From Salpingoeca rosetta (Eukaryota; Protista; Choanoflagellata), in the NCBI GenBank assembly GCA_033442325.1, contig JAWQFM010000009.1, positions 1,229,863 to 1,272,959 of the forward strand: 43,097 bases of DNA, given 5' to 3'. The position numbers and the translations under genes are program-made. Each line of letters begins with the position of its first letter. Position 1 is the first letter of the stretch. The notes under the pieces were generated by a model. The model saw only the letters and a program-made list of their open reading frames with translations, was not told where the DNA came from and searched no databases. This document shows, one piece after another, positions 4,050-43,097 of this stretch.

Positions 4050-7328
<3,279 letters not shown>

Positions 7329-23623: not shown

Positions 23624-23679
<56 letters not shown>

Positions 23680-26352
23680 ACCTGCGCTCATGCAGCGACG
23701 GGAGTTGTCGCTTGGGCCATAGCACGTGTAGTGGTTGTCACTCCCGCGATGCCCGAAGAAGAACCGGTTGCACGATTGATCCAAGTCACCACTGACGTAA
23801 TACGTGTCAAGCAGGTTAAGGCCGCCGCCGTTGTCATACCCGCGCATGTCCCCCGTGTTCCAGTTACCATCACACTCGGCAAGCGTCGGTGCAAGGCAGT
23901 GAATGTGCACTGAAGCAAAAGCGGACGACAACAATGTACCAAAAGGAAACCCACAGGGTGTGATAGTGAGATTGAGCACAAAGCAAACACAAGGTATGCC
24001 ATGCGTACAAGCAGCTGCCAGCACACACACACACACACACACATATGCAACACTCACATGTACGCACACACACATACACTCTCACACACACATATTCAGG
24101 CACACTCACACACACACACGTACTCACATGTACGCACGCACACACCTACACTCACACTCTCACACACACATACTCAGACACACTCACAAGTACACAAGCA
24201 CACAAGTACACCCATGCAAACCAAGCGTGGTTCGACGCACCTTCATCCAGTGCGAGACCAAGGTCTATTCGCGTGTCCACATACGAGTGGGGCGTGATGA
24301 TGTACAAGTTGTTGTTTGTGCAGCCCGACTCGATCTTCCACACGCGAAAGTCAGAGGCTGACGACTTGATGCTGTTGATTTGCACGTCTGAGAGCTTGCT
24401 GAAGGATGACACGAGGTCCTTCGTGGCAATGTTGCCCACGGATCCTATTTCATGTATGACACACACGCGCGCAAACCAAGGTGAGGCGTTGCCGGGCAAT
24501 GACAGCCTCTTGTCCGAGGCCTTACTTCATTGTCTCCACATCGCTTCAGAGCAGCGCATGTGTACACACAGACTTCCAAGACCATTCTCGAAACAGCATC
24601 GTTATGGCCTTGGCCTCACCACTGCAAACACATATGCACACACAAACCTGTGCTGTCATCGGTCCAGCCCACGTAGTTCTGTCCCGGATACTGAAGCACC
24701 TTCGCCCACTTGCCGCCATCGCGCTGGAAGTCACAAAACGCCTGTGCTCCCAAAAGTGGCACATGACGAAGATACTCATCGTTGTCGTGAGCGCCACCGA
24801 TACAAAAACACAGTCACAGATGCACACACACTCTCTCTCACACACACAAATACACACACGCACTCATTCACTCACTCACTCACTCACTCACTCACTCACA
24901 AATTCAAACACACACACACACAAATACACACACGCACTCATTCACTCACTCACTCACTCACTCACTCACTCACAAATACACACACACACAAATACACACA
25001 CGCACTCACTCACTCACTCACTCACTCACTCACTCACTCACTCACAAATTCAAACACACACACACACAAATACACACACGCACTCATTCACTCACTCACT
25101 CACTCACTCACTCACTCACTCACAAATACAAACACACACACACACCGTGAAAACGCCGGTGGAGGTGGAAAAGTAGTAGACGCCGTCATCTTTCGATGTC
25201 ACTTCGCCGCAGGTGGATGCAGGGGAATCCGGAACAAGGCCACGGCTCGATGCCTGCAGGCAATAGCAACAGCAACACAGCACAAGAAAGAACAACGCAC
25301 ACGCACACACACGCACACACACGCACACACACGCACACACCATGAGCTCAGTCAAGCTCTTCTTGACACCATGCCTTGTCACTTAACGCAAATCTCGCCT
25401 GAGTGTTCAACCTCGCGTGTGAGAGACATTGACTGTCTACCTTTTGGAAAGCTGCAAAGTCTGCTTGCTTGGACAGGATGGTTGAGATCTGGCCTTGGAC
25501 TTGCAACAGCGTGTCTGCTTGGCTGGTCTGTGTTGATTCGCTTGCAGAGAGCTTTGACGTGAGCTCGCCCACGACGCCACCCATGCCCTCGAAGAGCGTG
25601 GATACCTCCTGGCTCAGCTCGCCGGTGGCCATGCTGGCCTCCGCGGCGGCTCGGTTCACATGCCGCTGCACATCTTGGATGCTGTCTGTGAGGCTGGCGT
25701 TGACGCCATCCAGGGACGACCACGTGGCGGCGAGAGACGCGTTGATGGCAGCGAAAGAGCGGGCAATGGCCGCCTCCATGGAGCTGAACCGCGGCACAAG
25801 CGCATCCGTCACCACCTCGCTGGTGGTGGAGATTTCGGTGCGCAGCGCGCCCTCCACGTCGGTCACGGTGTCGTTCACGCGCTGCACGTCGCCCCTTCAA
25901 AGCCAGCGTTGGCAGTGTTGACAAAAACGCCCTTGATGTCCGTGACGCTCACGGGATGGTCATTGTTGTTGCTGCTTGCCGTTTTTGGTCTGGAACACAA
26001 ATGTCGTTGCCAGCCCTGCAGGTACAGCGTGCCGTTTGCGGGCCCACATCTGCGGGGGCTCCATTTCCGTTGTCGCTGCCGGCAGTGCCGAAAGCATTTC
26101 CCGGCAGGTCTGCAATCACCCTGCGACACTGCCCGGGAACCCGAACTGACAGTTTGAGGGTGGCCGTGCCAGGCCGAGGAAGCCTGGTGAGGCCTGCACC
26201 ACGTTCGTCGGCACGGTGGCATTGCTGTTGGCAGCAGCATCGGTGTCACACGTGTCTGCCTCCCTGTGCATTTCACAACACCAAGAAAATTGCTCCCAGT
26301 ACCCCAGCACGAGTGCCAGCAGCACCGACACGCGCGCAGTCACGCCACACAT
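22667..26352 (-). CDS. Secreted multi-exon protein: signal peptide, cubilin-NTD-like segment, coiled coil and two fibrinogen/COLFI-like modules (copy 1; frameshifts in exon 1 as assembled)
   Basis: Signal peptide MCGVTARVSVLLALVL and NGTLYLQ segment, then a heptad region. Module 1 is PDSPASTCGEV..DGVYYF..AFCDFQRDGGKWAKVL...FTIWVKP. Module 2 is PDSPAQSCSTV..AYYL..GFCDQTGADGGWLKVL...LQIFVKP. Several indels relative to copy 2 lie at ~25890-26300. Confidence 0.65.
24850..25145. repeat. Compound (CACT)n/(CA)n minisatellite, longer here than in copy 2 (~35250-35408)
   Basis: Repeated cacacacaaatacacacacgcactcattcactcactc blocks. Confidence 0.85.
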
Positions 26353-26780
26353 TGTGTATGTGTCTGTGTCTGTGTCTGTCTGTGTCTGTGTGAGCAGCTG
26401 GTTGCGGTGGGGAAGGGGCAAACAACAAAACAACAGCTTGCTTCTTGCTTGCTTGCTTCTTGTGATTTGAAAACAAAACTGAAATCAGTTCAAATCGGGA
26501 GCTTTTGTCAGAATTGCATTTCCTGATCAGAGGCCACACAGAGCAACCTGCAGCAGCCAACACCAACATCATCAGCATCGGCACAAGCGTCTGTGCAGGC
26601 TGAGGTGCTGCAATCGTTGATGGCACTCGTGCGTCGCCACCATGCACTTGCTGCAGCTGGCAGGCACAACAGGGTGGTGATGGCGGCGATGGTGGTGATG
26701 GTGAAGTGGCATCGGTGCAGAAGAAGCAGCACGTGCAGCGGCAACAGGTGCCGCGTCGCAGGATGAGGGATTGGGGGTGG

Positions 26781-26856
<76 letters not shown>

Positions 26857-26870
26857 AGAGATGAACACAC

Positions 26871-28439
26871 CACGTGCGGGTAGCCGAGGCGTCAAAGGAA
26901 GCGACGGTCACGGCAACATTGAGGGAGGAGATGGTAGTGAGGCCAAGCTGGATGGTGTACTCGATCTGGCACCAGGGGCCGTGCAGCAATGGAGGGATGG
27001 TGTTGGCAGCAAGGCGCAACGAGGGAAGGCGCACACACAGAGGGGAAGGACGGAAACAAAGGGCGGAGAGAGAGACACGCGCATGCACACACAGCACATA
27101 CACACACAGAGGCACAGCACACAGACACGCAGCACACAGCAAAGAGACATACACGACACCTTTTGCACAGCGTTGATGCAGCGTTGGGTGGATGCGTTGT
27201 AACGGATGGTGCAATCACCATCACATCCACCTGTAAAGGCAAAGCAAGGGCGGGAAAATGTCATGCGGGGTCATGTGAGGTCATGTGAAGTCACAGACAA
27301 TGAGACACTCATACACACACACACACCAAACACTCCTCACACACACACCAAACACTCCTCACACAACACATCACACACACAGACACATACACACAAACAC
27401 TTCCTTACACTACACACACACACACCACACACAACACCACATCACTTCCCACTTCCTCCCTCCTCCTTCCCAAGGTCTCGACTGACTGTAAGAGATTTGG
27501 ATGTTGGTTGTGATGCCTGTGTATGTTGCAAGGACCGCGGCGTCTGCTGGGACCGGCACATCAAGGTCGCCACCAGGACTGCACATTGCCCAAACACGCT
27601 CGGCATCGTCTGCCGCTGGGATGATGCGGGTGCACGTGCCTGGCGCAGACGCAAAGAGGCGCGTTGGATTGCGTGGTGCACCCCCCTTCCTGCAGCGTGT
27701 CGGCGGGAAAAGGCAGCGGTGTGAGCGTCGTGCTGTCCTGCGTGATGTACACGATCGCGCCATACGTGACGTAAAAGGGGAAAGGGTCTTGGCGTGGGAT
27801 GGTGTTGCGTGGCGGAATGAAGATGGCCTCCTCCGGCGTGTACTGCAGCGTCTCGAGGCTGAAGGATATGGGGTGGGGGCGTGCAGCGTCTGCGAATGCC
27901 TGGAACGCGGCGTCATTGAGCGGCGTGCGCGGCTCCCTGAACGAGATGCGGTCATTTGTGTTGTCGACCAGCACGCACGCGATGCTGCTGCCCTCTGCTG
28001 CTTGGATGGCCTGGTTTCTGCCCTCGTTGGTGACGAAGAAGTCGTCGTACACGCACCTGCGCAAGGGCTTGATGTCTGGCGTGTTGCAGTAGGCAAAGCG
28101 CACTTTCACCAGCGTCGTGCATGACGGATCACAGCAGCAGTTTGCGTTGCACTCCGCCGTGAGATCGCATGGGCACTCGGCAAACGAGGATGCGCATGGA
28201 TCTCAGCTCCGCACCTGCGCAAACGCGGGCGGCGTTGTTGTTCAAGTTGCTGACAGTGCACTTGTTAAGTTGCTGTTACTGCAGCTGTTGTGGTGGTCGT
28301 CGTCGGAAGAGTGGTGGTGGTGGTGGGTGTTCTGGGAAGCTGCAGGTGCAGCCATGGGCACAGCAGCAGCAACAACAACAACAGCGACAAGAACAGCCAC
28401 CACAGCACCTCTGCGGCACATCGATGCACGTCGAACCAT
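26871..28439 (-). pseudogene. Tectonic (TCTN/DUF1619)-like 5' gene fragment, copy 1, disabled
   Basis: Signal peptide, then the tectonic Cys motif ECPCDLTAECNANCCCDPSC, followed by CVLVDN..F.EP, YGAIVYI..LPFP, NPTRLF..CTR and CINAVQK|IEYTIQL. The frame is broken upstream of the Cys motif (TGA at 28205-28203) and near 27685. No downstream tectonic exons are visible. Confidence 0.7.
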
Positions 28440-28940
28440 GGCCGTGCCCATACGGAGACAAGACAGAGACAGTCCGCCGACGACACAGCAAAGCAGACAA
28501 CTGCTGTTGCCGAGGAATCATGGAAATCATCTTCATTTTTCGGCCTGTGGTTTGCCATTTTCCCTCGCTCGGTTTTTCAAAAACGAAACACCACCAACAT
28601 CAACCACCACCCGCGACAAGACAACAAGACAATCGCAGACACTCAAGATGACAGCCGCGCAGGCTTCGACACCGGTGAGGCCATCTGACAAAGTGTGGTG
28701 GGCCATTGAGGGCTGAGCAAGCGATGGAGAGGGAGCCGTTCAACGTGCCTTGCAGCACGCAGCATGTGCAACGGTGACGGCCCAGCATCACTTGTTGTCG
28801 AAGCACTTGCCTGCTAGCACAAATGCGCGCGCTTTTTGAGTTGCTCACACATGTACGCCTGCACACACGCACACACACACACACACGCGCGCACATATGA
28901 TGGACGATGCAAGGGAGAGGATTCAAACAACAGTACCGCA

Positions 28941-29793
28941 ATGTCCACCTCTCAAAAGGGGAAAACCAAAGAGCCTGAGCTCATGACAAGCCTGTCGACA
29001 AACGACGTGAGTTATTGTTTGGGTTGTGTGCGAACGTGTGGCGATAGCCCGAGAGGGCGCGTGTATGAGTGTCTGGCTATGTGCATGTACATGTGCGCAC
29101 CTGTGTATGTGTGAGTGTGTGCACCTGTGTATGTGTGAGTGTGCACCTGTGTGTATGTTTACGTTTGTGTATATGTATGTGTGTGTGCATATGTGTGTGC
29201 ATGTGTGTGCGTTTGAGTGTGCATATGTGTGTGTGCGTGTGTGCACTCGGAAACCATCATCAACACGCTCTTGGCGCCAAAATTGTCTACGTGCACACCA
29301 GCCATAATCTCACTTTGTGGGCACCTGCTGTACTTCGTCCAATCGACCCGCCCTTCTTGCTTTCAGGCTGGCGTTCTTGCGCGCGCATATCTGCAAGCAG
29401 CAACAGACGAGTACAACAACCTTTTGGGGGACGCTCAGCTAGGCCCCGACTCAGACTACCAAACCTCTGTTGAGCAGATCAAAACAATCGCCGCCAAGTA
29501 CAAGCTCAAAGCCTTTCCTCTGTCACCGAAATCTGAGGCACAGCAATACGTCAAGAGCTTGCTGGAGAAGCCCTTCACCGACAACATCAAGGACCTGCTC
29601 CAGCAAGTCCGCAGTGTGCTGGATGAAACGACGCCGACGCCACAGGTGACCTTGAGGGTTGCAAAAGGGTTCCTGAAGAAGCTTGACAACGTGACACGCA
29701 AAGGGCTGTCCGAAGAGCAACGGCAGTTTCGACAAGGTGCGCCTGTCTCACTCTGCCTTGAATGTGCGGCTGTGTTACCAAATGAGCTGATGC

Positions 29794-29859
<66 letters not shown>

Positions 29860-32377
29860 ATCAGTGTTGTTAGATTACTGCGAGCAGCCCTGTGCATGAG
29901 CACCCTGGTTGACTGACACGTTGCTGGCAGATTGTTTTGAACTCATACTGGCTGTTTGGTGTGGTTCGTGGCAGATTTGGAGTCAAGCGTAACCCCCAGC
30001 AGCGCTGCCAAGGAGAAGGAGAAGAACAAGGATTCGGCCCACAGAACAGTCTATGCGCAGCCGTTCTCTGCCGAGCTTCTCTGCCCCAACTGGCACCTGC
30101 ACAACGAGGGGTTTCAACGGGCAGTCGATCAGGGCACAAAGAGGGGTAAGGTCGTTGTCGAGCATGTGTTTGCTTGCTGTGTACACGTGTACATGTGAGC
30201 GTCCTTTTCACGAGAGAACGTGGCATGTGTGTGTGTGTTTATGTGTCGGTGTTGATGCATGGTGGTTGGGTCTTTGGCACTCGTGCGCGGGTGTGCTGGC
30301 ACTGGAAGGGAATGTCTCTCTGTCGCTCACACCAACGCTGCACCATGCACGCCCACCGCACTGCAGGCTTTTCTGGCGTATTTTGCACGCCAGAGACGCG
30401 GTTCAACGACCGCATGAAGATACCTCTGCTCAAGGCTTGTGGTGATGCAAAAGTGGACGTCAAGAGCCATGCATCATTTGAGGCCGACACCGCTGTTGTC
30501 GCCGACTATGTTGTGCGTCTGATGTCAAACCTTGACTTCTACCCGCTGTTGCTTGAGCTCAAGACCGATGGCAGCCAGCCGACGCAGGATGCTGCCAAGG
30601 CGCAGGTGCTGGAGTACGCATCACGGGCCATCAAGTCTGCGGGGCCGCAATGGCGTAAGTTGAAGGGGTATTTGTTTCCCTTTGCCATCACCGTCTGCGG
30701 GCAGAACGTGTCCGTGTACGCGTGCACGCTGGGCGATGAGGTGCACGGCAAGGAGGCCTTTCCCAGCGTCCTCCACACAAAACTTTGCGACACCAAAGTG
30801 AGTTGCCACCGCATGTGCGAACAGAGAAGAAGGGTGTGCGTTGTGTGTGTGTGTGTGTGTGGCACACATGCTCCTGCGCGTGTGCATGTGCAGTTGCTAT
30901 CGACTGGCTGTCGCCTTGTATACTGCTAATTGTCGTTGGACATGGCGCTCACATTGGTTTCCTGTGCTGTGGACTGTAGTTGGAGAAACTCGGGAATGTC
31001 ATTGAGTGGCTGCTTGACAAAGAGCACATGGCGCATTACGAGAATATTGCCGCCATTGCCCAGGTAGCCGTCGCAGGAGTGATTTGATGCCCACTTACTC
31101 TGTTGCCTGCTTGTCTTCTTGCTGTCTTGCTCGCCTGCTGTCTTGGTATTCTGCCATCATGACACACCTCGCACACAAACGCATATGCACACACAAATCC
31201 TGTGTGCGTGCGTGTATCGTCTTTCTTTCGTTCAACAATCAACAATGATACTCACTTCCGCACTCGCACACACACACACACATACGCCATGGCACAGGGA
31301 AAAGGGAGCGGTCTCACCTCCATTCTGGAGCACAGAGTCTGCAATGTGTCATCTACAGCTGACGGTGGTGCGCGCAACAACAGTGGCAACGGCGACACCA
31401 ACGACAGCGCTGATGGGGATGTGCAGAATGAGGAAGAGCGCGACAAGGCAGCCACGCAGACCGACACAGCAGACAACGGCAAGGAGGGGCATCAGCGTCA
31501 GCAGCTTGCGGTCACCAAAGCAGCACGGGCGAGGTCTGCCAAAGTTGCCACGACATACGAAATGTGCGTCTACAAAGGCGATGAGGATACGGTCACGGTT
31601 GCATTGGTGAACGGCGAGGTGTTGAAGGTGTGCGGCGGCCACGAGATTGGCGCTGCCAAGGAGGCTAGCAACGAACGGAAAGGCTGGCAACACGTCTATC
31701 CAGAGGAAACGGTGAAAGTGCACGAGCGGTCACGCCCCGTGTTTGCCTGTCCCGACCTATCGAAGCATATAACGGGCGCGGGCACCGACGGCAAGAAGGC
31801 GCTTCTTGGCACGGGCATCAAGGACGAAGCGGGGCTTGCGGCCGCTGCTGAGTACCTCCTCCGCTTGTCGGAACGGGATCTATGTCACCGTGACATTCGC
31901 TCGCACAACATCCTGCGCAACGGCTGCATCGTCGACTTTGGTTTCCTCTGCAAGGCTCGCTCGCGGGATGAAGCACAGGCCCCCCCTTCGTCGCTTCCCG
32001 AATCTTACTCCACGCGGCTGCGGGAGCGCCCTCGCAAGTGGCTGCTGCATCACGACGCAGAAGCGATTCCTGCAGACGTTGTTCTGGATTGGGAATCGCT
32101 GCTGTTTGCATACGTATTCTCCTCCACTTCTCTCTCTGATGCCATGTACCGGTTGCTTGAGGGCAAGGCGTTCCTGTTGCAGTGGCTGGAGGCCAAGTTG
32201 GCCAAGTTGGACAAGGACGAGAAGCAGGCGACAGCAGCTCTGCAGGACAAGAGCGACTACGACAAGAAGAAGGAGACAGCAGCGCTGCAGGACAAGAGCG
32301 ACGACGACAAGAAGAAGGAGGAGACAGCAAAGCTGCTGCGCAACATTATGCAGCACATTGCTTGCGCGTACTTCTAA
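28941..32377 (+). CDS. PD-(D/E)XK nuclease + protein kinase fusion (Crinkler/CR-effector-like), copy 1 (exons 28941-29006, 29367-29736, 29975-30145, 30367-30797, 30980-31063, 31298-32377)
   Basis: Exon 4 has PETRF..VADYVV..LLLELK..AKAQVLEY (nuclease motifs D, ExK, QxxxY). The last exon has EVLKV, NERKG, HRDIRSHNIL, IVDFGF and DWESLLF (kinase). All introns are GT-AG and the spliced frame is open. Confidence 0.8.
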
Positions 32378-33454
32378 ATGGAGTGCGCTGCGTGTGTTTG
32401 TGTGTGTGCGTGTGGGTGGGTGGGTGTGGGTGTGGGTGTGGGTATGTGGGTGTGGGTGTTTGGCTTGGACAGAGTGGGAGAGCGCGCACGTGTGTGTATG
32501 AGTGCGAGAAGGTTCATGTGTGTGCGTTGTTTGAATGGATATGCGTGTGTGTGTGTGTGTGCGTGTGTTGTGGGGCTGGAGACGATGATGGTTGCTTCCC
32601 TCTCTTTAAAGCGACCCTCGAGCAGTGTGTTCTTCGTGTTATGTGTGTGAATTGTGCTGCATTAAATGGCCCTACGCCGTGAATCCTCCTACAATCAATC
32701 GCACACACATACACAACAACACAACAACAACAACAACGCCGCTCACCAACAGTGTTTACTCGGCCACCGTCACATCTGCTGCAAGTAGAGCAAGCACGTG
32801 TGCGAATGTATTGCCACACGTTCAAACGCGCACAACCCCCGACATTGAAGTGCGCTCGCTTGCTTTGACAACCCAGCGGGCGAGCGGGTCAAAGTGCTTG
32901 ACTGCAAGGCAAGACAGTGGTGCCGCTGTCGCTGTCGCGTCGTCGGGATGTTTGTGTGTGGTGTAGTTTTCTTACTGTTCCCCTCGAATTCAACCCGCCC
33001 CCTTTGCGCAAGTGTTTGGGCGTTTGTGCTCAATATTCAGCAGCGTTGGACTGCTGTCTTGGCGACGTAGTGTACTGTACACCGTTTCTTTTGTGTGGAT
33101 CTTCTCTGCCTTGCCATCAGCTTCCCAGCACGCTTGACTTGTGTTTTCAACCAACAGTGCAAACAAATCAACCACGCCAAAGACAGGCAAGGCCGTACGC
33201 AGCAAGGAACCACAACAAAATCACGTGCAATTATGTAAAATACAGACACGCACACCATCAGGCAATTCCAATGCACCCGTTTACAACGGCATTATCTGAT
33301 CCGAACCTAGCTGAATGCAACAACGCACACCTCACACAAACAAATACACGCACCACAGCGCATCAAACATGCAATCGCTCATCCAACACACGCGCACGCA
33401 AGCGTGCACCAGCATCACCACCAACAAACAAGCAAACAAGCTACACACGGCAGA

Positions 33455-33723
33455 TCAGTCGTCGAGACTGAAGGGAGGGTATTCGCCTGTGACGGTGTGT
33501 GGAGTTTCATCTTCATCGCCGCCACCAAGTGATGGGGGCAGGGGACTGCTGGGCTGGCGTGGCTGCCACGGTGACAGACCAAGATAGCTCTGTATGCCGC
33601 ACACGCCGTGCACATTCACACGAGATGTGTGAGAAGACAGCGCACAAACAGCGTATCAGACACGCAGACAGGGAAACATTGCACTGGGCACGACTGCAAG
33701 GCTGCACACAAAGGTACACGCGG

Positions 33724-33784
<61 letters not shown>

Positions 33785-33880
33785 ACACCACACCACACCA
33801 CACACACGTCTGGCTTGATGACGTGCACAGCGACGCTGAGCTCACGGTTGATAACGAGCATGGCAGCATCGTTCCCGAAT
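33455..33880 (-). other. Two orphan 3' exons (33880-33808, 33589-33455) of an unidentified gene in the spacer between the duplicates
   Basis: cag|...|gtgtgt and cag|...TGA, reading FGNDAAMLVINRELSVAVHVIKPD|SYLGLSPWQPRQPSSPLPPSLGGGDEDETPHTVTGEYPPFSLDD*. No counterpart in copy 1. Confidence 0.4.
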
Positions 33881-34004
33881 CTGAGAGGTAAAATACACGA
33901 AAACAAATGAACGCCCGTGAGGGGACGTGGGGTGGGTTGCACACGGGTATCAAAAGTTTCAGGCACCTGACAAAGAGCACACACACACACGCACACACAC
34001 ACAC

Positions 34005-34084
<80 letters not shown>

Positions 34085-34086
34085 AC

Positions 34087-36592
34087 CTGCGCTCATGCAG
34101 CGACGGGAGTTGTCGCTTGGGCCATAGCACGTGTAGTGGTTGTCACTCCCGCGATGCCCGAAGAAGAACCGGTTGCACGATTGATCCAAGTCACCACTGA
34201 CGTAATACGTGTCAAGCAGGTTAAGGCCGCCGCCGTTGTCATACCCGCGCATGTCCCCCGTGTTCCAGTTACCATCACACTCGGCAAGCGTCGGTGCAAG
34301 GCAGTGAATGTGCACTGAAGCAAAAGCGGACGACAACAATGTACCAAAAGGAAACCCACAGGGTGTGATAGTGAGATTGAGCACAAAGCAAACACAAGGT
34401 ATGCCATGCGTACAAGCAGCTGCCAGCACACACACACACACACACACATATGCAACACTCACATGTACGCACACACACATACACTCTCACACACACATAT
34501 TCAGGCACACTCACACACACACACGTACTCACATGTACGCACGCACACACCTACACTCACACTCTCACACACACATACTCAGACACACTCACAAGTACAC
34601 AAGCACACAAGTACACCCATGCAAACCAAGCGTGGTTCGACGCACCTTCATCCAGTGCGAGACCAAGGTCTATTCGCGTGTCCACATACGAGTGGGGCGT
34701 GATGATGTACAAGTTGTTGTTTGTGCAGCCCGACTCGATCTTCCACACGCGAAAGTCAGAGGCTGACGACTTGATGCTGTTGATTTGCACGTCTGAGAGC
34801 TTGCTGAAGGATGACACGAGGTCCTTCGTGGCAATGTTGCCCACGGATCCTATTTCATGTATGACACACACGCGCGCAAACCAAGGTGAGGCGTTGCCGG
34901 GCAATGACAGCCTCTTGTCCGAGGCCTTACTTCATTGTCTCCACATCGCTTCAGAGCAGCGCATGTGTACACACAGACTTCCAAGACCATTCTCGAAACA
35001 GCATCGTTATGGCCTTGGCCTCACCACTGCAAACACATATGCACACACAAACCTGTGCTGTCATCGGTCCAGCCCACGTAGTTCTGTCCCGGATACTGAA
35101 GCACCTTCGCCCACTTGCCGCCATCGCGCTGGAAGTCACAAAACGCCTGTGCTCCCAAAAGTGGCACATGACGAAGATACTCATCGTTGTCGTGAGCGGC
35201 CACCCGATACAAAAACACAGTCACAGGATGCACACACACTCTCTCTCACACACACAAATACACACACGCGCTCATTCACTCACTCACTCACTCACTCCAC
35301 TCAGTCACAAATTCAAACACACACACACACAAATACACACACGCACTCATTCACTCACTCACTCACTCACTCACTCACTCACTCACAAATACAAACACAC
35401 ACACACACCGTGAAAACGCCGGTGGAGGTGGAAAAGTAGTAGACGCCGTCATCTTTCGATGTCACTTCGCCGCAGGTGGATGCAGGGGAATCCGGAACAA
35501 GGCCACGGCTCGATGCCTGCAGGCAATAGCAACAGCAACACAGCACAAGAAAGAACAACGCACACGCACACACACGCACACACAAGCGCACACACGGAGG
35601 GGGAATGAGGCTAGCAAGCTCGTCTTGAAAGCATGCCTTGTCACTTAACGCAAATCTCGCCTGAGTGTTCAACCTCGCGTGTGAGAGACATTGACTGTCT
35701 ACCTTTTGGAAAGCTGCAAAGTCTGCTTGCTTGGACAGGATGGTTGAGATCTGGCCTTGGACTTGCAACAGCGTGTCTGCTTGGCTGGTCTGTGTTGATT
35801 CGCTTGCAGAGAGCTTTGACGTGAGCTCGCCCACGACGCCACCCATGCCCTCGAAGAGCGTGGATACCTCCTGGCTCAGCTCGCCGGTGGGCCATGCTGG
35901 CCTCCGCGGCGGCTCGGTTCACATGCCGCTGCACATCTTTGGGATGGCTGTCTGTGAGGCTGGCGTTGACGCCATCCAAGGGACGACCACGTGGCGGCGA
36001 GAGACGCGTTGATGGCAGCAAAAGAGCGGGCAATGGCCGCCTCCATGGAGCTGAACCGCGGCACAAGCGCATCCGTCACCACCTCGCTGGTGGTGGAGAT
36101 TTCGGTGCGCAGCGCGCCCTCCACGTCGCTCACGGTGTCGTTCACGCGCTGCACGTCGCCCTTCAAAGCCAGCGTTGGCAGTGTTGACAAAACGCCCTTG
36201 ATGTCCGTGACGCTCACGGGATGGTCATTGTTGTTGCTGCTTGCCGTTTTGGTCTGGAACACAATGTCGTTGCCAGCCTGCAGGTACAGCGTGCCGTTTG
36301 TGGTCCACATCTGCGGCGCTCCATTTCCGTTGTCGCTGCCGGCAGTGCCGAAGCATTCCCGCAGGTCTGCAATCACCTGCGACACTGCCGGATCCGACTG
36401 GCAGTTGAGGGTGGCCGTGCAGGCGAGGTAGCTGGTGAGGCCTGCACACGTCGTCGGCACGGTGCATTGCTGTTGCAGCAGCATCGTGTCACACGTGTCT
36501 GCTCCCTGTGCATTCACAACACCAAGAACATTGCTCCAGTACACCAGCACGAGTGCCAGCAGCACCGACACGCGCGCAGTCACGCCACACAT
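34087..36592 (-). pseudogene. Secreted cubilin-NTD-like/fibrinogen-like gene, copy 2, 3'-truncated by the duplication breakpoint
   Basis: Same exons as copy 1 down to ...RRCMSA|g (34087), but the last three exons are absent. Indels at ~35890-35990. Confidence 0.65.
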
Positions 36593-36627
36593 TGTGTATG
36601 TGTGTCTGTGTGTGTCTGTGTGTGTCT

Positions 36628-36659
<32 letters not shown>

Positions 36660-37066
36660 CTGTGTGTGTGTGTCTGTGTGAGCAGCTGGTTGCGGTGTGG
36701 AGGGGGCAACAACAAAACAACAGCTTGCTTGCTTGTTGCTTGCTTCTTGCTTGTTGTGATGTGATTATTGAAAACAAAACTGAAATCAGTTCAAATCGGG
36801 AGCTTTTGTCAGAATTGCATTTCCTGATCAGAGGCCACACAGAGCAGCAGCCAACACCAACATCATCAGCGTCGGCACAAGCGTCTGTGCAGGCTGAGGT
36901 GCTGCAATCGTTGATGGCACTCGTGCGTCGCCACCATGCACTTGCTGCAGCTGGCAGGCACAACAGGGTGGTGATGGCGGTGATGGTGAAGTGGCATCGG
37001 TGCAGAAGAAGCAGCACGTGCAGCGGCAACAGGTGGCCGCGTCGCAGGATGAGGGATTGGAGGTGG

Positions 37067-37139
<73 letters not shown>

Positions 37140-37148
37140 TGAACACAC

Positions 37149-38719
37149 CACGTGCGGGTAGCCGAGGCGGCAAAGGAAGCGACGGTCACGGCAACATTGA
37201 GGGAGGAGATGGTGGTGAGGCCAAGCTGGATGGTGTACTCGACCTGGCACCAGGGGCCGTGCAGCAATGGAGGGATGGTGTTGGCAGCAAGGCGCAACGA
37301 GGGAAGGCGCACACACAGAGGGGAAGGACGGAAACAAAGGGCGGAGAGAGAGACACGCGCATGCACACACAGCACATACACACACAGAGGCACAGCACAC
37401 AGACACGCAGCACACAGCACAGAGACATACACGACACCTTTTGCACAGCGTTGATGCAGTGTTGGGTGGATGCGTTGTAACGGATGGTGCAATCACCATC
37501 TCAACCACCTGTAAAGGCAAAGCAAGGGTGGGAAAATGCCATGCGAGGTCATGTGAGGTCATGTGAAGTCACAGACAATGAGACACACACACACACCAAA
37601 CACTCCTCACACACAACACCCACACCTCCCCACACACACACACACACAGACACAGACACAGACACAGACACAGACCCCCCCCCCACACACACACACAAAC
37701 ACTTCCATAAACACTTCCACACACTACACACACACAACACACAACACCACATCAGTTCCCACTTCCTCCCTCCTCCTTCCCAAGGTCTCGACTGACTGTA
37801 AGAGATTTGGATGTTGGTTGTGATGCCTGTGTATGTTGCAAGGACCGCGGCGTCTGCTGGGACCGGCACATCAAGGTCGCCGCCAGGGCTGCACATTGCC
37901 CGAACACGCTCGGCATCGTCTGCCGCTGGGATGATGCGGGTGCACGTGCCTGGCGCAGACGCAAAGAGGCGCGTTGGATTGCGTGGTGCGCACACCCCCT
38001 GCAGCGTGTCGGCGGGAAAAGGCAGCGGTGTGAGCGTCGTGCTGTCCTGCGTGATGTACACGATCGCGCCATACGTGACGTAAAAGGGGAAAGGGTCTTG
38101 GCGTGGGATGGTGTTGCGTGGCGGAATGAAGATGGCCTCCTCCGGCGTGTACTGCAGCGTCTCGAGGCTGAAGGATATGGGGTGGGGGCGTGCAGCGTCT
38201 GCGAATGCCTGGAACGCGGCGTCATTGAGCGGCGTGCGCGGCTCCCTGAAAGAGATGCGGTCATTTGTGTTGTCGACCAGCACGCACGCGATGCTGCTGC
38301 CCTCTGCTGCTTGGATGGCCTGGTTCCTGCCCTCGTTGGTGACGAAGAAGTCGTCGTACACGCACCTGCGCAAGGGCTTGATGTCTGGCGTGTTGCAGTA
38401 GGCAAAGCGCACTTTCACCAGCGTCGTGCATGACGGATCACAGCAGCAGCTTGCGTCACACTCCGCCGTTATACTCAGCAAACGAGGCTGCGCATGGATG
38501 TCGGCTCCGCACCTGCGCAAACGCGGGTGTTCTTGTTGTTGTTCAAGTTGCTGACAGTGCACTTGTTAAGTTGCTGGTCGTCGTCGGAAGAGTGATGGTG
38601 GTGGTGGTGTTCTGGGCAGTTGCGGGTTTAGCCATGAGCACAACAACAGCAGCAGCAGCAACAGCGACAAGAACAGCCACCACAGCACCTCTGCGGCACA
38701 TCGATGCACGTCGAACCAT
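37149..38719 (-). pseudogene. Tectonic-like 5' gene fragment, copy 2, disabled
   Basis: Signal and Thr-rich leader MVRRASMCRRGAVVAVLVAVAAAAVVVLMAKPATAQNTTTT. A small deletion removes CPCDL, leaving ITAECDASCCCDPSC. The remaining domain is open in ORF 37549-38562. Confidence 0.7.
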
Positions 38720-39238
38720 GACGCTATGACGAGCCCATACGGAGACAAGACAGAGACAGAGACAGACAGACCGCCAACGACAGTTACGCCCACAGCAAAG
38801 CAGACAACTGCTGTTGCCGAGGAATCATGTATATCATCATCATTTTTTCGCCTGTGGTTTGCCATTTTTCCTCGCTCGATTTTTCAAAAACGAAACACCA
38901 CCAGCCAGCAGCCAGCATCAACATCAACCACCGCCCGCGACAAGACAATCGCAGACACTCAAGATGACAGCCGGGCAGGCTTCGACACCGGTGAGGCCAT
39001 CTGACAAAGTGTGGTGGGCGATTGAGGGCTGAGCAAGCGATGTGGGGGGGGGGGGGAAGGGAGACACCCAACGTGCCTTGCAGCGCACGCAGCGTGTGCA
39101 ACGGTGACGGCCCAGCATCACTTGTTGTCGAAGCACTTGCCTGCTAGCACAAATGCGCGCGCTTTTTGTTTCTCACACGTGTACGCACACACACATGATG
39201 CACGATGCAAGGGAGAGGATTCAAACAACAGTACCGCA

Positions 39239-40082
39239 ATGTCCACCGCTCAAAAGAGGAAAACCAAAGAGTCTGAGCTCATGACAAGCCTGTCGACAAA
39301 CGACGTGAGTTATTGTTTGGGTTGTGTGCAAACGTGTGGCGATAGCTCGAGAGGGCGCGTGTATGAGTGTATGGTTATGTGGTGCATGTACATGTGCGCA
39401 CCTGTGTATGTGTGAGTGTGCACCTGTGTGTATGTTTACGTTTGTGTATATGTATGTGTGTGTGCATATGTGTGTGCATGTGTGTGCGTTTGAGTGTGCA
39501 TATGTGTGTGTGCGTGTGTGCACTCGGAAACCATCATCAACACCCTCTTGGCGCCAAAATTGTCTACGTGCACACCAGCCATAATCTCACTTTGTGGGCA
39601 CCTGCTGTACCTTGTTCAATCGACTCGCCCTCTTTCCTTTCAGGCTGGCGTTCTTGCGCGCGCATATTTGCAAGCAGCAATGAAAGAGTACGAGAGCCTT
39701 TTGGGGGGCACTCTGCAAGACTGCAAGCGATCATACCGCGCCTTCGCCGAGCAGATCAGCACAATTGCAGGCCGGCATGGGATCGAAATCGGTTCAACCG
39801 GCCCTCTCGACAACGCACCCAAGGCAAAGAATTATGTCGACAGCATGCTGAAGCAGCCCTACACGGAAAACATCAAGAACCTGCTCCAGCAAGTCCGCAG
39901 TGTGCTGGATGAGAAAAAGACGCCGACGCCACAGGTGCCCTTGAAGGTTGCGGAAGGGTTCCTTCTGGAGCTTGACAATGTGACACGCAAAGGGCTGTCC
40001 GAAGAGCAACGGCAGTTTCGACAAGGTGCGCCTGTCTCACTCAGCCTTTCATGTGCGGCTGCGTGACCAAATGGGCTGATGC

Positions 40083-40152
<70 letters not shown>

Positions 40153-41162
40153 ATCGGTGTTGTTAGATTACTGCGAGCAGCCCTGTGCATGAGCACCCTG
40201 GTTGACTGACACGTTGCTTGCGGGTTGTTTTGAACTCATACTTGCTGTTTGGTGTGGTTCGTGGCAGATTTGGAGTCAAGCGTAACCCCCAGCAGCGCTG
40301 CCAAGGAGAAGGAGAAGGACAAGGATTCGGCCCACAGAACAGTCTATGCGCAGCCGTTCTCTGCCGAGCTCTTCTGCCCCGACTGGCACCTGCACTACGA
40401 GGGGTTTCAATTGGCAGTCGACGAGGGGTTTCAATTGGCAGTCGACGAGGGCACAAACACGGGTAAGGTCATTGTCGAGCATGTGTTTGCTTGCTGTGTA
40501 CACGTGTACATGTGAGCGTCCTTTCCACGAGAGAACGTGACATGTGTGCGTGTGTGTGTTTGTGTGTCGGTGCTGATGCATGGTGGTTGAGTCTTTGGCG
40601 CTCGTGCGCGGGTGTGCTGGCACTGGAAGGGAATACCTCTCTGTCGCTCACACCGACGCTGCACCATGCACGCCCACCGCACTGCAGACTTTGACTTTCA
40701 CGTTCCGAAGCGAGAGACGCGGTTCAATGACAGGATGAACGTGCCCCTGATCAAGGCGTGTGCTGGCGCAGCAGTGTACGTCAAGAGCCACGCGTCCTTT
40801 GAGGCCGACACCGCTGTTGTCGCCGACTATGTTGTGCAAATGGCCTCAAATCTTGACTTCTATCCGCTGTTGCTTGAGCTCAAGATCGATGACAGCAAGC
40901 AGACGCAGGATGCTGCCAAGGCGCAGGTGCTGGAGTACGCATCACGGGCCATCAAGTCTGCGGGACCGAAGTGGCGTAAGTTGAAGGGGTATTTGTTTCC
41001 CTTTGCCATCACCGTCTGCGGGCAGAAGGTGTCCGTGTACGCGTGCACGCTGGGCGATGAGGTGCACGGCGACGAGGCCTTTCCCAGTATCCTCCACACA
41101 AAACTTGGCGACACCGACGTGAGTTGCCACCACATGTGCGAACAGTGAAGGAGGGTGTTTGC

Positions 41163-41215
<53 letters not shown>

Positions 41216-42983
41216 CACACATGATCCTGCACGTGCACCCGTGCAGTTGCTGTCGACTGGCTGCTGCCTTGTACACTGCTAGTTGTCGTTGGACGCTGCG
41301 CTCACATTGGGTTCCTCTGCTGTGAAATCCAGTTGAACCGGCTCGGGCATGTCATTAAGTGGCTGCTTGACGAAGAGCACATGGCGCATTACGAGAATAT
41401 TGCCGCCATTGCCCAGGTAGCCGTTGCAGGAGTGATTTGATGCCCACTTACTCTGTTGTCTGCTTGTCTTCTTGCTGTCTTGCTCGCCTGCTGTCTTGGT
41501 ATTCTGCCATCATGACACACCTCGCACACACACACACATACACGCACACATGTTGTGTACGTGTGTGTGTGTGTGTGCGGCGCCCTCGTGTACCGTCTTT
41601 CTTTCGTTCAACAATCAACAATGATACTCACCTCCACAATCGCACGTTATCATACACAATCACACAATCACACAATCACACAATCACACAATCACACAGG
41701 GCCGTCTCACCGTCATTGATGAGAACCCCGCCGGTCCCACACCACCAGCAGCAGCAGACAACGGCAAGGAGGAGCAGCGTCAGCGTGCAGACGCCGAAGC
41801 AGCACGGGCGAAGTCTGCCAAAGTTGCCACGAGATACGAGATGTGCGTCTACAAAGGCGGCAAGGAGACTGTGTCGGTTGCATTGGTGAACAACGAGGTG
41901 TTGAAAGTGTGCGGCGGCCACCGCATTGGCGCTCCTGAAGATGAGAAGGCTGCCAGCGATGAGGAGACTGCCAGGGATGAGGAGGCTACCAGCGATGAGG
42001 AGGCTGCCAGCGATGAGGAGGCTGCCAGCGATGAGGAGGCTGCCAGCGATGCGGAGGCTGCCAGCGATGCGGAGGCTGCCAGCGATGCGGAGGCTGCCAG
42101 CGATGAGGAGGCTGCCAGCGATGAGGAGGCTGCCTGGGAAGAGGAGGCTGCCAGGGAAGTGAAGGGCTGGCAACTGCTCTATCCACACAAGAAGGTGAAA
42201 GTGTACGAACGGTCACGCCCCGTCTTTGCCTGTCCCAATTTGTCACAGAAAAGGAGCAAGCGCAAGAGCAATTGCAAGAACAAGCGCAAGGGCACCAAGA
42301 GCAAGCGCATCAAGAGCAAGCGCACGGACATCAAGGGCACAGGCATCAAGGGCACGGGCATCAAGGGCACGGGCATCGACGACGGGCAGGCGCTTGAGGC
42401 TGCGGCTGAGCACCTCCTCCGCTTGTCGAAAAGGGATCTATGCCACTGCGACATCCGATCTCACAACATCCTGCGCAACGGCTGCATCGTCGACTTTGGT
42501 TTCCTCAGTGGCCCTGTCAGTGACCCTGAAAAGAAGAAGAAGAAGAAGAAGAAGAAGCTTCCTCCTTCCTATTACACAGCGCTGCGGGAGCGCCCTCGCA
42601 AGTGGCTGCTTGGAAAGGCAACGGACTATTATCCAGAAGTTGTTCTGGATTGGGAATCGCTGCTGTTTTCGTACGTGTTCTGGTATGATTCTGTTGCCAA
42701 CGCCATGTTCCGGCTGTTTCAGGGCAAGGTGATCCTGCTGGAGTGGCTTGACGCCAAGCTGGACAAGCTGGACAAGGACGACAAGAAGAAGGAGACAGCA
42801 GCGCTGCAGGACAAGAGCGACGACGACAAGAAGAAGGAGACAGCAGCGCTGCAGGACAAGAGCGACGACGACAAGAAGAAGGAGACAGCAGCGCTGCAGG
42901 ACAAGAGCGACGACGACAAGAAGAAGGAGACAGCAGCACTGCTGCGCAACATTATGCAGCACATTGCTTGCGCGTACTTCTAA
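39239..42983 (+). CDS. PD-(D/E)XK nuclease + protein kinase fusion, copy 2 (exons 39239-39304, 39644-40025, 40268-40462, 40688-41118, 41333-41416, 41700-42983)
   Basis: Same motifs as copy 1 (VADYVV, LLELK, AQVLEY; VLKV, HCDIRSHNIL, DFG, DWES). All indels versus copy 1 preserve the frame. Confidence 0.8.
41940..42155 (+). repeat. Coding 18-bp tandem repeat x12 (DEEAAS) inside the kinase N-lobe of copy 2
   Basis: gatgaggaggctgccagc units; absent from copy 1. Confidence 0.95.
42777..42943 (+). repeat. Coding 45-bp tandem repeat (ETAALQDKSDDDKKK), about 3.5 copies; about 2.5 copies in copy 1 (~32215-32335)
   Basis: Direct repeats are visible in both DNA and translation. Confidence 0.9.
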
Positions 42984-43097
42984 ATGGAGTGCGCTGCGTG
43001 TGGTTGTGTGTGTGTGTGTGCTGTGTGTGTGGGTGTGTGTGGGTGTGTGGGTGTGTGGGTGTGTGTGGGTGTGGGTGGGTGTGTGTGTGCTGTGTGT

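Follow-up and report, generated by a model that had tools for sequence, protein, structure and literature searches.

We analyzed a 43,097-nt stretch of the genome of the choanoflagellate Salpingoeca rosetta (contig JAWQFM010000009.1; G000:C9:1229863-1272959; hereafter, the window), which contains a tandem duplication with a period of ~10.3 kb. Each of its two units, A and B, carries one intact gene of seven exons and six introns that is predicted to encode a nuclease joined to a kinase. The two genes are almost the same in some segments and heavily altered in others, and these differences very probably reflect mosaic ancestry via interlocus gene conversion among paralogs, with shuffling of cassettes in a putatively conflict-related nuclease-kinase family. 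Gene conversion from a larger family was strongly supported by comparison with the paralogs in the 55.4-Mb, 68-contig assembly that we searched (G000). The original prediction, made from the DNA letters only, had noted coding patches that appeared more divergent than the introns between them, and had proposed either diversifying selection or patchwise conversion from a larger family.

Gene structure of the tandem copies

The units were identified by self-BLAST and by MAFFT alignment of one against the other, and their main landmarks are as follows (window positions).

23624-32458, + strand: unit A of the tandem duplication; the true right end falls somewhere between 32458 and 34028
34029-43067, + strand: tandem duplication unit B; reaches the window end, and the DNA beyond is N
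23683-24880 versus 34088-35288: 1.2-kb block identical in A and B (100% in every 100-nt window)
26785-26853: (CA)n microsatellite, left edge of a ~6-kb unit shared with dispersed copies on contigs C8, C4, and C17

Annotated S. rosetta protein P0003 (751 amino acids, aa) mapped exactly onto copy A, with all exon borders GT/AG, and copy B had the same structure and was open throughout. In the encoded protein, a variable helical N-terminus is followed by a nuclease with a restriction endonuclease (REase) fold, a low-complexity linker, and then a compact kinase. Each exon was searched and aligned on its own, while database proteins P0001-P0012 served as full-length sequences.

Gene A:
28648-28675, + strand: exon 1a, a further 5′ exon known from the annotation
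28914-29006, + strand: exon 1b, with ATG at 28941 and a GTGAGT donor (P0003 mapping)
29367-29736, + strand: exon 2, variable helical N-terminal module (P0003 mapping)
29396-29600, + strand: exon-2 hypervariable patch, cassette type 1, 34% different from B
29972-30149, + strand: exon 3, N-terminal part of the nuclease domain (model residues 164-221)
30366-30797, + strand: exon 4, REase-fold nuclease core, with D at codon 40 and E-L-K at codons 63-65
30980-31063, + strand: exon 5, a conserved 28-aa helix
31298-32377, + strand: exon 6, low-complexity linker, compact kinase (VLKV, HRDIRSHN, DFG), K/D-rich C-terminal repeat, and TAA stop

Gene B:
39212-39304, + strand: exon 1b, from alignment to A
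39644-40025, + strand: exon 2
40265-40466, + strand: exon 3, containing eight codons duplicated in tandem and in frame (EGFQLAVD twice)
40687-41118, + strand: exon 4, nuclease core
41333-41416, + strand: exon 5
41700-42983, + strand: exon 6, encoding linker and kinase, with an uninterrupted frame between the acceptor cacacag|GGC and the stop

The peptides on which the original prediction had relied were all found where it had placed them on the + strand, specifically TDEYNNLLG at 29403, MKEYESLLG at 39680, GFSGVFCTPE at 30366, and DFDFHVPKRE at 40687.

Divergence between copies A and B

Sliding-window identity between A and B revealed that their divergence is non-uniform and confined to patches. 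Mismatches amounted to 3.0% in the upstream DNA (23683-28647) and 5.1% in introns 1-3 (40/790), while exons 2, 3, 4, and 5 differed by 21.9, 6.2, 13.2, and 9.5%, respectively, and exon 6, which encodes the kinase, by 23.2%. The exon-2 patch at 29396-29600 had 70/205 mismatches (34%; Fisher test versus introns, p = 5e-26), and the first 97 nt of exon 4 differed by 32% (p = 7e-14). In the global alignment, near-identity continued beyond the identical 1.2-kb block to ~29400, and substitution-rich patches were located at 29407-29600, 30363-30462, 31210-31500, and 31929-32200. The flank of A that is free of family sequence differed from that of B by ~2-3%.

Both the near-identical neighboring DNA (for which 23680-24790 versus 34085-35195 had been given as an example) and the heavily changed exon patches of the original prediction were thus confirmed, the latter far above chance. 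Its description of the introns was accurate for introns 1-3 and failed for introns 4 and 5, which differed by 14.3 and 12.4%, similar to the adjacent exons. Likewise, exons were more divergent than introns in the 5′ half of the gene but not in the 3′ half.

Synonymous divergence between A and B was 6-8 times higher in the patches than divergence in introns 1-3 (0.051; Fisher p = 6e-7 to 3e-9): the exon-2 patch stood at 0.32, the initial 30 codons of exon 4 at 0.42, and the kinase between activation loop and C-lobe at 0.30. In these patches, synonymous sites had diverged as much as replacement sites. Because their synonymous divergence so far exceeds that of the introns, the patches represent older sequence beside a young backbone, rather than sequence rewritten in place.

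Tracts shared with dispersed paralogs

A search of the assembly with the nuclease exon recovered 13 close copies at 70-100% aa identity on 10 contigs (two each on C9, C8, and C24, and one each on C4, C29, C17, C23, C16, C22, and C2), as well as nine distant copies at 35-43% identity. A 14th close locus, L036 (G000:C4:112000-121999), retained exons 1-3 along with a stretch that matches the DNA downstream of copy A, and had a run of N where the nuclease and kinase exons would be expected. The family consists of at least 14 intron-bearing paralogous loci. For comparison, 10 kb was taken around each close copy, the sliding identity of A and of B was computed against every paralog, and tracts were delimited by Viterbi painting under a copying model.

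The closest relatives of A and of B changed from segment to segment. In the exon-2 patch, A was closest to L025 and L024 (97/88% and 94/89% in two 100-nt windows, versus 75/57% between A and B), and B to L023 and L027 (98-100% over 39687-39886, versus 60-63% between A and B). At the start of the nuclease exon, where A and B were 69% identical, A matched L023 at 100% and B matched L028 at 96%. Further downstream, the kinase and 3′ flank of A were closest to L023 (95-100%; 97% over 31396-32400), the kinase C-lobe of B to L025 (96-98%), and the tail of B to L023 (100%). The following tracts were delimited.

30312-30552, + strand: A = L023 (C8), 241/241 identical, beginning 54 nt inside intron 3
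39669-40074, + strand: B = L023 (C8), 404/406 identical, holding the exon-2 patch (cassette type 2)
40675-40794, + strand: B = L028 (C23), 116/120 identical, with all other copies at 68-81%
42585-42768, + strand: kinase C-lobe of B = L025 (C4), 181/184 identical
42769-43000, + strand: tail of B = L023 (C8), 229/229 identical

Since the tract shared by A and L023 starts within intron 3, the divergent tracts do not follow exon borders. In every segment, A and B each also had private differences.

Recombination and selection

Recombination tests were performed on 2421 gap-free columns from 12 copies, which contained 1380 polymorphic and 894 informative sites. The pairwise homoplasy index (PHI) was 0.425, compared to a permuted mean of 0.506 (standard deviation 0.0026; z = -31), and none of 1000 permutations was as low. 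In a GENECONV-style test, the longest concordant run of polymorphic sites was recorded for each pair and assessed by 2000 column permutations with a global correction. This test returned 16 pair fragments with global p < 0.05, among them L023-L027 at 29341-29629 (191 sites), A-L023 at 30322-30570 (141 polymorphic sites, global p < 0.0005), and B-L023 at 29597-29947 (126 sites) and 29393-29519 (89 sites; both with global p ≤ 0.001).

Maximum-likelihood trees of individual segments were in conflict with strong support. The exon-2 patch united A, L024, and L025 (100/99) in one group, and B, L023, and L027 (100/99) in another. At the nuclease start, A was identical to L023, and B grouped with L028 (92/99), while the kinase C-lobe placed A with L023 (97/100) and B with L025 (90/91). 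Patchwise conversion from a larger family, the second of the two explanations in the original prediction, was therefore upheld by near-identical twins among at least 14 loci and by significant PHI, GENECONV-style, and tree-incongruence results against the genomic paralogs.

By Nei-Gojobori estimates, the ratio of replacement to synonymous divergence (dN/dS) between A and B was above one in exon 2 (1.17) and below one in exon 4 (0.61) and the kinase (0.67). Pooled over the family, exon 2 had a ratio of 0.87, with a local window of ~2, and the other exons 0.44-0.61. Replacement and synonymous changes were also counted over three phylogenetically independent pairs, in which the exon-2 patch had a dN/dS of 1.29, rising to 2.0 in codon columns 12-32. 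In the same pairs, replacement deficits were significant in exons 3 and 5, the tail of exon 2, the remainder of exon 4, and both the catalytic region and the C-lobe of the kinase, with dN/dS of 0.44-0.62 in exons 3, 4, and 5 and the kinase cores. The replacement to synonymous ratio (N:S) was 142:32 in the exon-2 patch versus 388:190 in the rest of the gene (odds ratio 2.2, p = 2e-4).

Between A and B, the proportion of replacement differences (pN) was 0.45 and that of synonymous differences (pS) 0.14 in the first 20 codons of the patch, whereas the HRD...N...DFG region had a pN of 0.02-0.04 versus a pS of 0.3-0.4. These data go part of the way to demonstrating purifying selection on the nuclease and kinase catalytic cores, and, in the exon-2 patch, at least six deeply diverged types with dN/dS of about 1-2. 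That selection helps to keep the exon-2 cassette types apart is plausible but unproven.

Origin of the differences between A and B

A and B are recent tandem duplicates within an S. rosetta-specific family, in which, as the tests indicate, tracts of ~100-400 nt, and up to ~1 kb, have been copied across contigs by interlocus (ectopic) gene conversion or recombination, such that each family gene is a mosaic. A and B received tracts from different relatives, and hence look heavily rewritten there, while the duplicated backbone was kept or homogenized, and hence they are near-identical there. The divergent versions of each patch, at a synonymous divergence of 0.3-0.5, are old alleles or cassettes in circulation within the family and not new mutations. 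At the protein level, the variable N-terminal module may set specificity or regulation, with the REase-fold domain as a putative effector and the kinase as its likely regulator. Cassette shuffling could thereby generate combinatorial diversity in a conflict-related protein, whether immune-like or selfish.

The first explanation in the original prediction, diversifying selection in place, holds that point mutations were fixed by positive selection in certain exon patches after the duplication. It would account for the high pN relative to pS over the 20 codons that open the exon-2 patch and for the exon 2 ratio above one, but it does not explain why synonymous sites in the patches have diverged as far as replacement sites and 6-8 times as far as the introns next to them. 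Nor does it fit the 96-100% identity of each patch to a paralog on another contig, the tracts that span exon-intron borders, or introns 4 and 5 being as diverged as neighboring exons, and we give this cause of the A/B differences hardly any weight.

Misassembly, in which reads from paralogs that are 85-100% similar were misjoined into chimeric copies or a false tandem duplicate, also appears very improbable. In its favor are runs of N at window positions 4707-4892, in L023, L027, L030-L032, and L036, and past the window (there as a gap or as masked sequence), and the long identical stretches between copies, which are difficult to assemble. Against this, the tracts of 120-400 nt have copy-specific differences on both sides and are shorter than read-chimera switches, the junction between A and B is free of gaps, and the same type of mosaic recurred in all 13 loci on 10 contigs. 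Moreover, exons 2-5 were open in 12/13 aligned copies, and the private differences of A and B extend to every segment.

Purely neutral concerted evolution deserves more attention, although we regard it as unlikely. Here, conversion would homogenize the family, the patches would be too diverged to convert (heteroduplex rejection), and no selection for diversity would be involved. The position of introns 4 and 5 within mosaic tracts agrees with this scenario, as does the family-wide dN/dS of ~0.5-0.9, which suggests weak constraint, and a replacement excess that is not significant alone. Yet the exon-2 patch has twice the N:S ratio of the remaining gene, the patch moves as a unit between backbones, and exons 2-5 and the kinase (open in 12/12 copies) have kept their frames almost throughout. 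Because B, L023, and L027 are 98-100% identical in the exon-2 patch, the patch is not refractory to conversion.

Several points weigh against mosaic ancestry with cassette shuffling in a conflict-related family as we have set it out. The replacement excess in the exon-2 patch over the three independent pairs was not significant alone (P = 0.21 and 0.115); dN/dS was ~1-2 in this patch, not significantly above one, and ~0.5 elsewhere. The patch is either relaxed or diversifying, and relaxed constraint fits equally well. Painting at a low switch penalty probably over-segments, with only the long tracts secure, and its fine segmentation is approximate. All copies come from one gapped assembly, and the direction and timing of single conversion events are not resolvable from the present data. 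Finally, the function of the protein is deduced solely from its modelled fold and motifs.

An arms-race function of the family is suggested by analogy. A more specific possibility, which we consider quite doubtful, is a choanoflagellate-specific germline recognition repertoire, in which recognition of a pathogen, non-self, or a selfish target would fall to the N-terminal module and the response would be executed by the nuclease under gating by the kinase, with cassette shuffling over ~14 loci building the repertoire. More speculative still, conversion could be driven by breaks that the nuclease of the family itself introduces. If such a repertoire exists, it would be a diversification system of immune-like type in those unicellular organisms most closely related to animals, and a role in defense or in distinguishing self from non-self would place repertoire building by cassette shuffling near the animal root. 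Alternatively, a selfish element would account for segmental duplications bounded by microsatellites.

The family pairs a deeply polymorphic N-terminal module with conserved catalytic cores, has expanded recently, and shares 100% identical tracts across contigs, a combination of features common in conflict genes. Interlocus gene conversion, itself a known process, occurs here in an uncharacterized, species-restricted nuclease-kinase family of a genetically tractable organism that is the main laboratory model for animal origins. More generally, where paralogs are more divergent in exons than in introns, mosaic ancestry should be tested before selection is invoked.

Paralogous loci and their variation

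A segment of ~6 kb, introns included, was common to A, B, L023 (C8), L025 (C4), and L027 (C17) and begins at the (CA)n microsatellite noted above, with the homology of the latter three loci to A starting at 26792-26880. L024 (C8) shared with A just the part from ~28726 on. L027 was the single exception to the open exons 2-5, with a 1-nt deletion at ~5013-5040 of the locus, near the start of exon 2, that causes a frameshift; annotated P0004 begins at an internal Met just after it.

Individual copies had further peculiarities. L028 (G000:C23:800960-810959, minus strand) contained a partial internal duplication of the kinase N-lobe, in which two matches to one part of the query lie ~660 nt apart with stops between them. 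In L032 (C22), the most divergent close copy, DFG is replaced by FGFGF and E-L-K by E-L-R, and judging from these residues it may be catalytically dead. The two C24 copies (198667-199119, minus strand; 289315-289767, plus strand) are inverted, ~90 kb apart, and equal in score and identity versus the copy-A nuclease exon; both loci contain long runs of N. A 747-aa open frame in L026, considered as an intron-less copy, was ruled out as a read-through of microsatellite introns.

Repeats were also observed within gene B. The EGFQLAVD duplication in exon 3 (window 40410-40464) was present in no other copy, and exon 6 had two in-frame repeat insertions at 41850-42380 that lack a counterpart in A. 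The first, which follows the alpha-C region of the kinase, is acidic and resembles (AASDEE)n, and the second, ahead of the catalytic lobe, is a basic K/R-rich run plus (KGTGI)n.

The nine distant copies (L014-L022) form a second nuclease-kinase subfamily, with the 35-43% identity applying to the nuclease half and the nuclease core split by an intron. Seven of the nine (L015-L020 on six contigs, and L014) match annotated P0012 and P0010.

In protein searches, proteins of S. rosetta ATCC 50818 were the sole named matches. When the nuclease-exon profile was run against 1.84 billion representatives in an exhaustive HMMER search, eight proteins were returned, none of them from oomycetes or chytrids; those that were named were all from S. 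rosetta, and two came from Logan assemblies. By sequence similarity, the family appeared detectable only in S. rosetta.

Flanking DNA

The window has a G+C content of ~55% and abundant (CA)n/(TG)n microsatellites, and CA/TG microsatellites flank a scaffold gap, a 186-base run of N at 4707-4892. Just past the window (43098 onward; G000:C9:1272960-1281999), 8712/9040 bases are N, so that neither the point where unit B ends nor a possible third copy is visible. The identical 1.2-kb block (23683-24880) is non-family DNA common to A and B only, and of the upstream DNA near it, only fragments (25900-26530) recurred elsewhere in the genome. No tRNA was found in the scanned region 26000-38000, which spans the A/B junction.

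Upstream of gene B, we noted a minus-strand open frame of 338 aa (window 37552-38565) with a weak match to DUF1619_N (25.9 bits, versus a cut-off of 22). Stops interrupt its A counterpart (~27260-28264), while the B frame is intact. As this frame was found solely beside young family copies on C9, C8, C4, and C17, it belongs to the duplicating cassette.

Predicted protein domains

Searches of Pfam, NCBIfam, PADLOC, and PDB sequences with single exons and annotated proteins returned nothing above cut-off, and an Atlas assignment of the nuclease to BpuSI_N at 0.90 is taken as a lead only. An AlphaFold2 (AF2) model of the nuclease exon alone had a predicted local distance difference test score (pLDDT) of 51, and its fold matches were weak (Z ≤ 6.2) though enriched in PD-(D/E)XK nucleases. 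With full-length P0003 and 10 family members, the nuclease at approximately residues 195-395 (exons 3-5) was modelled at pLDDT 83-91. The modelled elements are helices at 230-245 and 291-311 and strands at 250-258, 261-272, 281-286, and 323-331, consistent with a predicted PD-(D/E)XK core fold of alpha-beta-beta-beta-alpha-beta order.

Structural comparison with VIA aligned the nuclease with the N-terminal nuclease of DrdV at Z 9.6-9.7 (root-mean-square deviation 2.7 Å over 124-125 residues), with the REase-like 3ijm at Z 8.4, and with 6okh/9y1l at Z 7.0-7.5. Because non-catalytic mitoribosomal proteins of the REase fold matched equally well (Z 9-9.9), the fold alone is no proof of activity. 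As for the motif, D40 at the start of strand 2 was invariant, position 63 was E or D, and K65 on strand 3 was present in 11/12 copies (R in L032). The D...(D/E)xK motif was also found in the distant members P0009, P0010, and P0011.

In the kinase, VLKV (with the beta-3 Lys), LCH(R/C/M)DIRSHN, and VDFGF were conserved among copies, apart from L032, which is without the D of DFG. Pfam scores were sub-threshold, with APH at 14-15 bits and Pkinase_fungal/Pkinase at 17-19 bits in P0010. Fold matches to PRPK, DRAK2, IRAK4, and JAK were weak (VIA Z ~5) in a region modelled at pLDDT 50-78. The hypervariable patch falls in the N-terminal 190 residues, which were modelled as low-confidence helices and begin with the hydrophilic sequence MSTSQKGKTKEPE.

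Comparison with known systems

The joining of an REase-fold domain and a protein kinase in one polypeptide resembles Crinkler/CR effectors, such as CRN8 of Phytophthora infestans, as does the large, modular, and recombining nature of the family. According to the review PMC5289972, which cites Zhang et al. 2016, about one-sixth of CR C-termini carry REase plus kinase, and toxicity is proposed to reside in the nuclease, with the kinase regulating it. Crinkler relatives have been reported in free-living eukaryotes (PMC12957317). Unlike Crinklers, the S. rosetta genes have six introns, the organism is a free-living bacterivore, and the N-terminus is modelled as all-helical rather than as a ubiquitin-like header with LxLFLAK. 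There was no Pfam Crinkler match on exon 2 or full-length P0003, and no LFLAK-like motif in the sequence. Membership in Crinkler/CR was therefore unsupported, given the missing header and the lack of a sequence relation detectable by HMMER with the nuclease profile.

Among nucleases, the predicted core fold, with D...(E/D)xK on strands 2 and 3, is shared with DrdV (type IIL; PDB 7lvv/7lo5) and 3ijm. Sequence identity is ~10%, with no profile match, and the S. rosetta domain is fused to a kinase and not to a methyltransferase.

In its organization, the family resembles plant NLR/Cf-type clusters, Plasmodium var, and Trypanosoma VSG, with dispersed and tandem paralogs, short shared tracts, and a hypervariable module beside homogenized flanks and introns. 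PHI, GENECONV, and incongruent segment trees are the tests usual for mosaic families of this type. The S. rosetta family differs from them in encoding a predicted intracellular nuclease-kinase, neither a receptor nor a surface antigen; there was no sign of programmed (somatic) switching, and selection for diversity is unproven. Mosaic multigene families shaped by interlocus gene conversion are a known kind, to which the nuclease-kinase family of S. rosetta is newly added.

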